Shown piece after piece: positions 18,106-38,540 of a DNA stretch of 64,000 nucleotides. The position numbers and the translations under genes are program-made. The notes under the pieces are model-generated. The model had not been told where the DNA came from, searched no databases, and was given only the letters and a program-made list of their open reading frames with translations. Each line of letters opens with the position of its first letter. Position 1 is the stretch's first letter. The stretch is from Macrostomum lignano (taxonomy: Eukaryota): NCBI GenBank assembly GCA_002269645.1, contig NIVC01001505.1, positions 212,481-276,480 of the forward strand, written 5' to 3'.

Positions 18106-21100
18106 CTACAGACTGCAGCATGAGTTCCATGAGACCACTTTGCTTGTCGAGTGGTAGATGCCATCGTAGCAAACTGCAAGGTTCAAATTGGATGAACTGT
18201 TCGACTCACAGACTGAACCCCATTCACACACAGGCTGAGGCACCATTCACACACAGACTGAGGCACCATTCACCCACAGACTGAGGCACCATTCACACAC
18301 AGACTGAGGCACCATTCACACACAGACTGAGGCACCATTCACACACAGACTGAGGCACCATTCACACACAGACTGAGGTACCATTCACCCACAGACTGAG
18401 GCACCATTCACACACAGACTGAGGCACCATTCACACACAGACTGAGGCACCATTCACACACAGACTGAGGCACCATTCACACACAGACTGAGGCACCATT
18501 CACCCACAGACTGAGGCACCATTCACCCACAGACTGAGGCACCATTCACACACAGACTGAGGCACCATTCACACACAGACTGAGGCACCATTCACACACA
18601 GACTGAGGCACCATTCACACACAGACTGAGGCACCATTCACACACAGACTGAGGTACCATTCACACACAGACTGAGGCACCATTCACACACAGACTGAGG
18701 CACCATTCACCCACAGACTGAGGCACCATTCACACACAGACTGAGGCACCATTCACACACAGACTGAGGCACCATTCACCCACAGACTGAGGCACCATTC
18801 ACACACAGACTGAGGCACCATTCACACACAGACTGAGGCACCATTCACACACAGACTGAGGCACCATTCACCCACAGACTGAGGCACCATTCACTCACAG
18901 ACTGAAGCCCATTCACACAGACTGAAGTCACAGACTGAAGCCCATTCACACAGACTGAAGCCCATTCACACAGACTGAGGCACCATTCACCCACAGACTG
19001 AAGCCCATTCACACAGACTGAGGCACTCACTCTTCCAGTTATTTCCAGCATCGTAGGCGGTGCAGTTCGGGCCGGACACGCCGCTCTGGAATTCAGCCGA
19101 CACAGTCCAGTGGACGACCTTCTGGTACAGCAGCGGCGTGGAGCTGGAACTGGCCTTGGCAACGGTGCCCTTGTACGACTCTGGATTAGTGGGAATCCAG
19201 GTGATACCATTGTCCTCGGAAAACAGATAGGAGCGATCGTCAGTGGTATTGCCATGGCAACCCTGAGCGTAGCCATAGAGACGGTTGGAGTCGGCGTGGT
19301 AGGCCACAATGCTGCCCACGGCTGGGCCCAAGTCTGAAGATAAAATTTGCGGTAGTTTCCAGTGTAGATTTACAGTAGATTTCAGTTTAGATTTGCGGTA
19401 GTTTCCAGTGTAGATTTGCAGTAGATTGCAGTGTAGATTTGCGGTAGTTTCGAGTGTAGATTTGTGGTAGTTTGTAGTGTAGATTTGCGGTAGTTTTTAG
19501 TGTAGATTTGTGGTAGTTTGTAGTGTAGATTTGCGGTAGTTTTTAGTGTAGATTTGTGGTAGTTTGTAGTGTAGATTTGCGGTAGTTTGTAGTGTAGATT
19601 TGTGGTAGTTTTTAGTGTAGATTTGTGGTAGTTTGTAGTGTAGATTTGCGGTAGTTTTTTGTGTAGATTTGTGGTAGTTTGCAGAGTGGATTTGTGGTAG
19701 TTTGTAGTGTAGATTTGTGGCAGTCTGTAGTGTAGATTTGTGGTAGTTTGCAGAGTGGATTTGTGGTAGTTTGTAGTTTAGATTTGTGGCAGTTTGTAGT
19801 GTAGATTTGTGGTAGTTCCCAGTGTAGATTTGCGGTAGTTTGTAGTGTAGATTTGCGGTAGTTTTTAGTGTAGATTTGTGGTAGTTTGTAGTGTAGATTT
19901 GCGGTAGTTTTTAGTGTAGATTTGTGGTAGTTTGTAGTGTAGATTTGCGGTAGTTTGTAGTGTAGATTTGTGGTAGTTTTTAGTGTAGATTTGTGGTAGT
20001 TTGTAGTGTAGATTTGCGGTAGTTTTTTGTGTAGATTTGTGGTAGTTTGCAGAGTGGATTTGTGGTAGTTTGTAGTGTAGATTTGTGGCAGTCTGTAGTG
20101 TAGATTTGTGGTAGTTTGCAGAGTGGATTTGTGGTAGTTTGTAGCGTAGATTTGTGGCAGTCTGTAGTGTAGAGTTGCGGTAGTTTGCAGAGTGGGTTTG
20201 TGGTAGTTTGTAGTGTAGATTTGCGGTAGTTTGTAGTGTAGATTTGTGGTAGTTTGTAGTGTAGATTTGCGGTAGTTTGTAGTGTAGATTTGTTGCAGTT
20301 TGTAGTGTAGATTTGTGGTAGTTTGCAGAGTGGATTTGTGGTAGTTTGTAGCGTAGATTTGTGGCAGATTGTAGTGCAGATTTGTGTTAGTTTCAAGTGT
20401 AGATTTGTAACAGATTGCAGTGTAGATTTGTGATAGTATTCATATTATAATAATTTTCAGTTGTCTTATGTTCATCTTGTTTTCTTAGTATACTTTCAAA
20501 TTTACAGTTGCCTCTCAACTCACAGGTCCACTTCCGGTTCTGCGCACTGGTGGACCTGTAGCACTTGGAGATGCCCGTGAGTTCCTCGGTGCTGGTGGGC
20601 ACGTGGTCGCAGTAATAGATGGTATCGCTGGTGTCGTTGAGGTACAGGTAGCTGCGGCCGCAGTGCCCGTTGTCGTACGGCTGCCGAGAGCAGGGATCTG
20701 ACGGTTGTGCAGATGGGGGAATTGTGATGCGTGAATGAGGACCTGTGAATCTGCGAATTATGAAGATATGTGAATGGATATTCGTGGATGCGGAATGAAG
20801 ATCTGTGAATATTAATCAATGATTAGGGATTTGTAAACAGGGAATCTGTGAATGGGTAATCTGTGAATCATGATCTGTGAACAGGGAATCTGTGAATCAG
20901 GAGCTATGAACGGGGAATCTGTGAACGGGAAATTTGTGAATGGGGAATCTGTGAAACAGGATCTGTGAACGGGAAATCTGTGAATCAGGATACGTGAACG
21001 GGGAATCTGTGAATCAGGAACTGTGAAGGGAAATATGTGAATAAGGATATGTGAACGGGGAATATGTGAATCAGGAGCTGTGAACGGGGAATCCATGGAT

Positions 21101-38540: not shown

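Follow-up and report, generated by a model that had tools for sequence, protein, structure and literature searches.

The minus strand of a 64,000-nucleotide window of the Macrostomum lignano genome (forward-strand positions 212,481 to 276,480 of contig NIVC01001505.1, assembly GCA_002269645.1; positions below are those of the window) carries a single intact, RNA-supported gene, Mlig018624.g2. Its 23 exons encode a protein with an N-terminal signal sequence and without a membrane anchor (Table 1). We rebuilt the gene from stop-free segments and from scored GT donors and AG acceptors between the coding segments. This gave a coding sequence of 5616 nt for 1871 aa in which all introns are GT...AG, the phases agree and there are no stops. 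The ATG at position 38540 is the only one among the segments that precedes a hydrophobic leader. The intron after exon 12 is 93 nt long, in-frame and stop-free, and the public model agrees on it. Our translation is identical at 1871 of 1871 positions to PAA67133.1 (BOX15_Mlig018624g2, hypothetical protein, Macrostomum lignano), and the public gene span on the contig, 20,435 nt, equals 38540-18106+1. The independent rebuild and this identity both bear out a first-pass annotation of the window, which had proposed a complete 23-exon, 1871-aa model with the same ends. Thus, the sequence is not new: Mlig018624.g2 is already annotated in GenBank, yet uncharacterised.

The public gene set (Mlig_3_7) was derived from RNA-seq via StringTie, TACO and TBONE together with transcript-boundary data (PMC5730564), so a single transcript for Mlig018624.g2 is supported indirectly. 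The possibility raised at first pass, that the exons belong to separate transcripts, finds no support in this RNA-seq-derived model, which has one 23-exon gene. The 90% cluster of the protein contains three full-length copies, BOX15_Mlig018624g1, g2 and g3, each of 1871 aa, and our translation differs from g3 and g1 at 12-13 positions; three near-identical copies are expected of the neopolyploid M. lignano genome. The g3 copy (contig NIVC01000475.1, L002 10001-29934) retains all 23 exons, which are 97.3-100% identical to those of g2. The two copies differ by 31 synonymous and 12 non-synonymous changes, and because this corresponds to a dN/dS of 0.12, both are under purifying selection. The large satellite-filled introns might raise the suspicion of a decaying pseudogene or of neighbouring genes fused by the annotation, and so might the bacterial-style list of open reading frames (ORFs), which does split the gene into fragments, as the first-pass annotation had pointed out. 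This suspicion is effectively refuted by the lack of stops, by splice sites that are all GT/AG and in phase, by identity to the RNA-seq-derived model, by two further intact 1871-aa copies with purifying selection between g2 and g3, and by the recurrence of the same domain order in proteins of several phyla (14 of 27; see below).

Table 1 Exons of Mlig018624.g2 and other features of the window
Feature	Position	Strand	Content	Basis
Whole coding span, Mlig018624.g2	18106..38540	-	ATG 38540-38538, TAG 18108-18106; 23 exons, 1871 aa	
Exon 1	38458..38540	-	aa 1-28: start, predicted signal peptide MHKQIILVALLCLISLSLS, first EGF Cys; donor GTAAGT	hydrophobicity maximum at residues 4-23
Exon 2	37873..37955	-	aa 28-56: EGF-like domain, six-Cys pattern C25...C52	splice model; weak Pfam EGF-family hits
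Exon 3	37389..37738	-	aa 56-172: single cadherin repeat, ends in RQRR (aa 169-172, nt 37400-37389)	Pfam Cadherin
Exon 4	36850..36969	-	aa 173-212: start of R1	splice model, repeat alignment
Exon 5	36396..36764	-	aa 213-335: rest of R1, ending YWVSAGAEY...VIWIGQ	splice model, repeat alignment
Exon 6	35408..35750	-	aa 336-450: first part of R2, putative Cys398-Cys412 hairpin, SGEGFGC	splice model, motif search
Exon 7	34952..35148	-	aa 450-515: second part of R2	splice model, repeat alignment
Exon 8	33923..34441	-	aa 516-688: all of R3 (Cys571-Cys584, YDYAVISL, WVGINQ)	splice model, motifs
Exon 9	33571..33830	-	aa 689-775: first part of R4 (Cys747-Cys760)	AlphaFold R4 pLDDT 93.4
Exon 10	32921..33185	-	aa 775-863: second part of R4 (YDKAVFSLG...N, IWIGQ)	splice model, AlphaFold
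Exon 11	32300..32606	-	aa 864-966: first part of R5 (Cys915-Cys928)	splice model, motifs
Exon 12	31872..32071	-	aa 966-1032: second part of R5	splice model; public model agrees
Exon 13	31507..31778	-	aa 1033-1123: first part of R6 (AGKNLPC)	splice model, motif
Exon 14	31026..31113	-	aa 1123-1152: middle part of R6 (YDTVAVNLGVVCN)	splice model, motif
Exon 15	29204..29374	-	aa 1153-1209: end of R6	splice model
Exon 16	26954..27513	-	aa 1210-1396: all of R7 (without Cys hairpin) and first DUF11-like residues	splice model, repeat alignment
Exon 17	25909..26089	-	aa 1396-1456: first part of DUF11-like domain D8	hhalign against bacterial DUF11
Exon 18	25559..25784	-	aa 1457-1532: second part of DUF11-like domain D8	splice model, hhalign
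Exon 19	24607..24905	-	aa 1532-1631: first two-thirds of discoidin (F5/8C) domain, from Cys1533	Foldseek, ortholog Pfam
Exon 20	21384..21561	-	aa 1632-1691: end of discoidin domain (DLFGC, Cys1679) and start of tail	ortholog alignment, Foldseek
Exon 21	20524..20697	-	aa 1691-1749: Cys-rich tail; degenerate first Asp-box STSAQNRKW (nt 20554-20528)	ortholog alignment
Exon 22	19031..19333	-	aa 1749-1850: tail, canonical Asp-box SEDNGITW (aa 1787-1794, nt 19220-19197)	BNR E 0.12, tail profile
Exon 23	18106..18173	-	aa 1850-1871: end of tail, C-terminal W..CC (SWNSCCSL), stop TAG	ortholog alignment
Intronic tandem arrays	18207-19026, 19345-20437, 21677-24569, 24926-25528, 26112-26840, 27530-29172, 29464-30389			
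Class C G-protein-coupled receptor	9194-9898 and 15822-17255	-	metabotropic-glutamate/taste-type	ANF_receptor ligand-binding ORF, E 3e-56; 7tm_3 ORF, E 7e-69
Retroelement	46543-49037	+	reverse transcriptase and RNase H ORFs	

The product had been read as secreted, with a signal peptide, no transmembrane segment and many N-x-S/T sequons, and this reading holds. Among 19-residue windows, only the one at the N-terminus is strongly hydrophobic (Kyte-Doolittle 2.36), there is no transmembrane segment up to the C-terminus (...SWNSCCSL), and no ortholog that we checked has a hydrophobic window of transmembrane strength beyond its N-terminal region. The flatworm protein has 54 sequons, about twice as many as its orthologs (10-46). 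The EGF-like domain behind the signal sequence was identified with less certainty. Its six-cysteine spacing (C25-C52) and a CxCxxCWxGxxC motif that is kept in orthologs speak for it, whereas the Pfam EGF-family hits to residues 20-54 are sub-threshold (E 0.0085-0.8).

The cadherin repeat that follows passes the Pfam threshold (PF00028; 35.5 bits for the exon alone and 31.0 bits for the whole protein, cut-off 28.8) and matches E-cadherin EC2 with an E-value of 1.2e-8. Tandem extracellular cadherin (EC) repeats with DxNDN-type Ca2+ linkers are absent; there is one repeat, ending VAIDVEAVKSRQRR, and then an unrelated domain. Such a single soluble repeat had been called unusual. The repeat is real, but its occurrence alone is a conserved feature of the protein family described below. 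The furin-type motif reported at its end, RQRR, is present, with intron 3 directly behind the RQRR codons, and its position is conserved: of the 18 listed orthologs with an N-terminal cadherin region, 17 have a R-x-[KR]-R sequence (RHKR, RRKR, RVKR, RTKR, RKKR and others) ahead of the first repeat.

The next part of the protein consists of the seven repeats of about 170 residues recognized at first pass (R1-R7; REP for the domain). In Smith-Waterman comparisons against shuffled sequences they reach z-scores of up to 14.0, every repeat being tied to R4 at z of at least 5.1; in the same test the cadherin, D8, discoidin and tail segments stay below 2.5 against everything. The motifs quoted for the repeats are present, namely the hairpin motifs SGEGFGC (residue 407), AGRNIPC (579), VGKYIGC (755), TGGNISC (923) and AGKNLPC (1105), YDxAxxxL at 610, 781 and 1129, and W[IV]G at 328, 670 and 845. 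Across 81 repeats from 20 family proteins, the hairpin Gly is found in 79, the Asn in 72, and both residues of a Cys-x12-13-Cys pair around the hairpin in 49; these two cysteines would presumably bond with each other. All seven repeat boundaries fall within about 4 residues of a phase-0 intron (exon starts 36969, 35750, 34441, 33830, 32606, 31778 and 27513). Thus, each repeat is a symmetric 0-0 exon set, the pattern that one would expect if duplication took place via exon shuffling.

Pfam, scanned with all 81 repeats, NCBIfam and a profile search of PDB sequences gave no model or match for the repeat. An AlphaFold model of R4 based on the 81-sequence alignment is confident (predicted local distance difference test, pLDDT, 93.4; predicted TM-score, pTM, 0.87) and shows two short helical turns besides nine to ten strands. 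Among solved structures, the folds closest to it are integrin alpha legs, the Gram-positive pilins EbpB and BcpA, cohesins and a CLIPPER adhesin domain, at TM-scores of 0.47-0.58. The model indicates that the repeat is a large beta-sandwich of the stalk type to which no solved structure is closely related.

We considered whether the domain behind R7, here named D8, is a divergent eighth REP, and rejected this based on an hhalign probability of 1.4% and cross-controls. The first-pass annotation had likened D8 to DUF11 and pilin-like folds. A direct DUF11 hit (PF01345) was found neither in the protein nor in 26 ortholog C-terminal regions, and there is no NCBIfam hit; the likeness emerges from the comparison of profiles with bacterial proteins presented below.

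For the F5/8C (discoidin) domain that had been proposed next, the ortholog alignment and the predicted fold agree with the proposal, whereas the flatworm protein itself fails the Pfam threshold. The region aligns column-for-column with the orthologs, and PF00754 is passed by 24 of these 26, with E-values down to 1e-16. When the C-terminal 486 residues were modelled with AlphaFold (pLDDT 79), Foldseek placed the region with FVIII C2, DDR2 DS, CASPR2 and NRP2 b1 (TM-score 0.75-0.78, root-mean-square deviation 2.7-3.2 Å and mostly about 2.9 Å, about 160 columns). By these two routes, the alignment and the model, the flatworm segment is identified as a discoidin domain. Cys1533 and Cys1679 flank it, are invariant in the 26-sequence alignment, and form a putative pair that would close the domain.

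In the Cys-rich tail, the Asp-box SEDNGITW is present as described at first pass, and the second unit seen in the family is degenerate in the flatworm (the first in order; Table 1). A family profile of the tail weakly matches BNR propellers in the PDB (GH74 at E 8e-6, SorCS2 at E 1.4e-3, and sialidases). These matches could be taken to mean that the tail is sialidase- or glycosidase-like and the protein a tethered extracellular enzyme. We consider this highly improbable because 6-7 blades are required for the propeller of a sialidase or GH74 enzyme, while the tail has about 190 residues and two Asp-box units. The matches cover the Asp-box strands only and not catalytic residues, and the Pfam BNR and Sortilin hits are sub-threshold. 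A closed propeller of at least six blades was not found, the PDB matches being to single blades only. The protein ends with a vicinal Cys-Cys (residues 1868-1869, nt 18120-18115) after a conserved Trp. Most orthologs, across phyla, share this W..CC, which had not been remarked on at first pass and which may link chains by a disulfide or serve multimerisation.

To place the protein among others, we used a profile built from the seven window repeats only in an exhaustive HMMER search of 1.84 billion representative proteins. It retrieved 250 clusters at E < 1e-3, 23 of them below 1e-30, and the top hits are 1600-1965 aa long. Seven repeats were detected in 17 of 20 family proteins, and six in the other three (tick- and decapod-like) at the E-value cut-off. 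Domain hidden Markov models (HMMs) give the order EGF, cadherin, dibasic site, seven repeats, D8, discoidin and tail; shorter models are N- or C-terminally truncated. The complete order (E-C-R7-D-F-T) occurs in 14 of 27 tabulated family proteins from several phyla, and the remainder are truncated models. Word-indexed searches were uninformative. The full protein returned its own cluster and cadherins only, the 20-sequence family alignment was dominated by giant cadherins and DUF11 proteins without returning the input family itself, and the 81-repeat alignment returned a single fragment. We therefore took the taxonomic range from the exhaustive HMMER search and from name look-ups.

The named members of the 20-protein repeat set span 8 phyla. 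For the family as a whole, named members were found in Annelida (Owenia fusiformis CAH1785049.1), Mollusca (Patella vulgata LOC126827499, Nucella, Lymnaea and Pecten), Brachiopoda (Lingula anatina LOC106179497), Nemertea (Lineus longissimus LOC135491664), Rotifera (Seison, partial), Chelicerata (the ticks Dermacentor and Rhipicephalus), Crustacea (Macrobrachium nipponense LOC135203997 and Cyprideis), Echinodermata (Strongylocentrotus purpuratus LOC584294, XP_030828382.1, and Antedon) and Hemichordata (two paralogs in Ptychodera flava, XP_070558199.1 among them). None of the 22 named clusters comes from vertebrates, insects, nematodes or non-bilaterians; since many hits, some of them arthropod-like, are unnamed, absence from any of these groups cannot be claimed. 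In Ptychodera flava, XP_070558196.1 and XP_070558197.1/XP_070558199.1 have consecutive accessions and lie on the same 47-Mb scaffold, which suggests a tandem duplication; one paralog model is without the EGF-cadherin-furin head.

The repeats are also orthologous by position. When flatworm repeats were compared with those of other species, the best partner had the same index in 37 of 56 comparisons, where 8 would be expected by chance, and the seven-fold structure is thus older than the protostome-deuterostome split. Mean pairwise identity is highest towards both ends (EGF 37%, R1 28%, F5/8C 25%, against 18-22% for the middle repeats), R1 being the best-conserved repeat, and this distribution fits functional ends joined by a spacer stalk. 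Based on domain order and alignment, it is nearly certain that the protein belongs to an unnamed, ancient and widely conserved bilaterian orthologous family of fixed architecture, and that it is not flatworm-specific. The first-pass annotation had recognized no named family with this order of domains, and in this respect it stands: all relatives are labelled 'uncharacterized', 'hypothetical' or 'F5/8 type C domain-containing'. A full-length match to a characterised family, which it had considered as the other possible outcome, did not appear; relatives were found, none of them characterised.

Two older, truncated gene models in UniProt (A0A1I8GIG5 and A0A1I8HPB5) are automatically named 'REJ domain-containing protein'. 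An REJ identity was not reproduced with Pfam, PF02010 having no hit in the protein (E <= 1) or in five orthologs; the name probably stems from a PROSITE profile that matches the repeat region weakly. It is nevertheless one reason to weigh a role at the reproductive or gamete surface, as an egg coat, sperm receptor or seminal component comparable to the sea-urchin REJ proteins or to the discoidin protein SED1. Gamete recognition often uses large, glycosylated, repeat-rich secreted proteins with lectin-like domains. We regard such a role as quite unlikely. Beyond the missing REJ hit, the architecture is conserved throughout and slowly evolving, with a paralog dN/dS of 0.12, unlike typically fast-evolving reproductive proteins, and the gene identifier was not found in the accessible text of the M. 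lignano supplements.

Relatives of the stalk were also found in bacteria. The flatworm-only REP profile matches bacterial proteins with whole-library E-values of 1.7e-9 and 5.2e-7. Giant proteins are among the bacterial hits of this search: one, of 3614 aa, is metagenomic, and another, of 4078 aa, is a 'LruC domain-containing protein' (MEM1246735.1) of an Acidobacteriota metagenome-assembled genome. The search with the family alignment also brought up DUF11-rich 'isopeptide-forming fimbrial' proteins. When our domain HMMs are mapped onto the giant proteins, they reveal alternating REP-D8-REP-D8 modules. The D8-type segment that we checked (P0195 1311-1432) is Pfam DUF11 (PF01345, E 4e-10), and the proteins carry multiple TIGR01451 repeats; their REP-type segments are without a Pfam model. 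In hhalign, animal and bacterial REP match with a probability of 99.0% (E 6.7e-18, 127 columns), and animal D8 and bacterial DUF11 with 95.4% (E 1.9e-8, 85 columns), the control cross-comparisons giving 1-4%. The first-pass hunch of a DUF11 or pilin-like fold is thereby supported. The bacterial REP profile in turn matches the grappling-hook protein GhpA of the predatory bacterium Aureispira (PDB 9flp, residues 829-985, E 1e-9), an entry that provides an experimental template for the repeat family.

The joint alignment has a shared core of G (G-E...), P, V.svG.N and D.a...lG.v.N (also written D.v.fdfG.v.N). Judged by profile comparison, both REP and the DUF11-like domain are homologs of the stalk modules that alternate in giant bacterial surface proteins. 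Three columns of bacterial REP hold a Lys (17 of 18), an Asp (18 of 18) and an Asn (14 of 18), a triad that resembles an isopeptide triad and may form the corresponding bond. In the 81 animal repeats the same columns are a gap, a hydrophobic and a hydrophobic residue, and isopeptide bonds in the animal repeats were rejected since the triad is not conserved. In place of the lost Lys/Asp/Asn triad, the animal repeats carry the Cys-x12-13-Cys hairpin.

How an animal came to have this stalk can be outlined tentatively. Before protostomes and deuterostomes separated, an early animal may have taken up, or received by descent, a REP and DUF11 stalk module of bacterial fibrillar adhesins. The repeat would then have multiplied to seven and exchanged a Lys-Asn isopeptide for a disulfide hairpin, and the module would have been fused to EGF, cadherin, discoidin and BNR domains. 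The result would be an unnamed core component of the bilaterian extracellular surface that went unstudied because vertebrates, Drosophila and C. elegans lack it or have it in a form that is not recognised. This scenario as a whole is possible, with the balance leaning against it. The literature on DUF11 and horizontal transfer and on limpet or urchin adhesives yielded nothing specific.

A matrix, mucus, adhesive or glycocalyx scaffold, as suggested at first pass, is a plausible role. The explanation that we consider best overall, and hold with modest confidence, is that of an extracellular protein of the adhesion or matrix type that is shaped like a rod, processed by furin and equipped with a lectin-like head, belonging to an unnamed bilaterian family and built on a stalk related to that of bacteria. 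For the functional mechanism itself, a matrix scaffold that works like a fibrillar adhesin, the chances are evenly balanced. In this mechanism the precursor would enter the secretory pathway and become heavily N-glycosylated, and a furin-type convertase would cut after RQRR, so that a small EGF-cadherin piece is released or re-positioned. In the remaining approximately 1700 residues, eight sandwich domains would make up a stiff rod, stabilised by disulfides, that keeps the discoidin and BNR-like head at a distance from the R1 end. The ligand of this head would be a glycan, a lipid or a molecule of the collagen type, and the conserved R1 end, the terminal Cys-Cys, or both could serve attachment or multimerisation. 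Overall, the protein would act as an extracellular adhesion or matrix scaffold (glycocalyx or apical extracellular matrix).

Several points weigh against this explanation. PF00754 gives no hit for residues 1531-1690 even at E <= 10, the Pfam BNR hit is sub-threshold (E 0.12), and the tail model is moderately confident (pLDDT 42-91). The fold matches of the repeat model, with TM-scores of at most 0.58, point to a generic beta-sandwich and to no specific functional class. Furin cleavage, N-glycosylation, the disulfide hairpin and the ligand are all predictions from sequence, and we found no reports of expression, localisation, proteomics or knock-down for the gene or its orthologs in the literature searched, nor any mention of Mlig018624 or of six ortholog identifiers; the text of the M. 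lignano paper supplements, as far as accessible, does not contain the gene identifier. Since the furin cut may detach the EGF-cadherin piece, the picture of two functional ends is uncertain.

A stalk with a head would also fit a soluble bridging or recognition molecule equally well, that is, an opsonin or agglutinin similar to MFG-E8 or EDIL3, in which the head binds a glycan or phospholipid on a microbe, dying cell or particle, the other end binds a cell receptor, and the stalk is a spacer. The protein is indeed secreted and without an anchor, it has an EGF domain at one end and a discoidin domain at the other as in MFG-E8 and EDIL3, and both ends are better conserved than the middle. Discoidin domains often bind galactose or phosphatidylserine (F5/8C, CBM32, lactadherin), which would suit such a head. 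We nevertheless rate the bridging role as rather unlikely. The integrin-binding RGD of the MFG-E8 type is absent in 13 full-length orthologs, as are KGD and any other conserved integrin motif, and the conserved furin site may separate the two ends. The single-copy, fixed seven-repeat design also lacks the lineage-specific expansion typical of immune lectins.

A secreted protein of about 1,800 residues with a domain order kept from flatworms to sea urchins and ticks points to a basic role at the cell surface. Newly defined here are the family, its boundaries, and a repeat domain without a Pfam model. The clear homology between an animal stalk and the stalk of bacterial adhesins, with an apparent swap of isopeptide for disulfide, makes a case for the movement and adaptation of domains across kingdoms. 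No concept is overturned, the protein being a modular glycoprotein of the adhesion or matrix type made from familiar fold classes. RNA interference, in situ hybridisation and transgenesis are workable in M. lignano, and the function is therefore directly testable.

The introns of Mlig018624.g2 are rich in tandem arrays (Table 1), comprising three distinct 23-bp satellites (the biggest of 127 copies), a 411-copy (GTTA)n array and arrays with units of 14, 28 and 31 bp. Several of them yield long spurious ORFs on both strands. The gene for a class C G-protein-coupled receptor lies directly downstream, and a retroelement lies upstream. A separate reverse transcriptase/RNase H insertion is found in the g3 copy, in the intron between exons 15 and 16 (L002 19188-21281).

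Among known systems, cadherins proper share one EC repeat with the flatworm protein, which lacks their tandem repeats, Ca2+ linkers and membrane anchor. The giant bacterial DUF11-repeat surface proteins, including MEM1246735.1, metagenomic 'isopeptide-forming domain-containing fimbrial protein' relatives and GhpA, have the same two domain types in a long tandem stalk. They alternate REP and DUF11, keep the Lys/Asp/Asn triad, have no Cys hairpin and carry type IX secretion system (T9SS) or LruC modules. In contrast, the animal protein has seven REP followed by one DUF11-like domain and has gained sequons and the EGF, cadherin, furin-site and discoidin elements. Gram-positive pilins (BcpA and EbpB) and the thigh and calf of integrin alpha resemble the repeat as all-beta sandwiches of 140-170 residues arranged in serial stalks. 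With identities of 8-12%, TM-scores of 0.47-0.58 and no sequence-profile match, this is a likeness of fold class and not family membership.

MFG-E8 (lactadherin/SED1) and EDIL3 (Del-1) are likewise secreted proteins with an N-terminal EGF, a C-terminal discoidin and no anchor. They have 400-500 aa, an RGD-bearing EGF and two tandem discoidins, whereas the flatworm protein has no RGD, one discoidin, and a stalk of about 1400 residues plus a furin site between EGF and discoidin. BNR/Asp-box propellers (VPS10/sortilin/SorCS, GH74, sialidases) share S-x-D-x-G-x-T-W units and the preceding strands with the tail, in which there are two units only in about 190 residues and many extra cysteines. The bilaterian orthologs, by comparison, align collinearly over their full length, with the same domain order, seven repeats, dibasic site, discoidin, Asp-box tail and W..CC. 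They differ from the flatworm protein in sequence (18-25% identity); the flatworm discoidin has diverged so far that it fails Pfam, and the first Asp-box of the flatworm protein is degenerate. Kinship with cadherin, discoidin, DUF11 and BNR proteins exists only at the level of single domains, and the true family of the protein is this unnamed bilaterian orthologous group.

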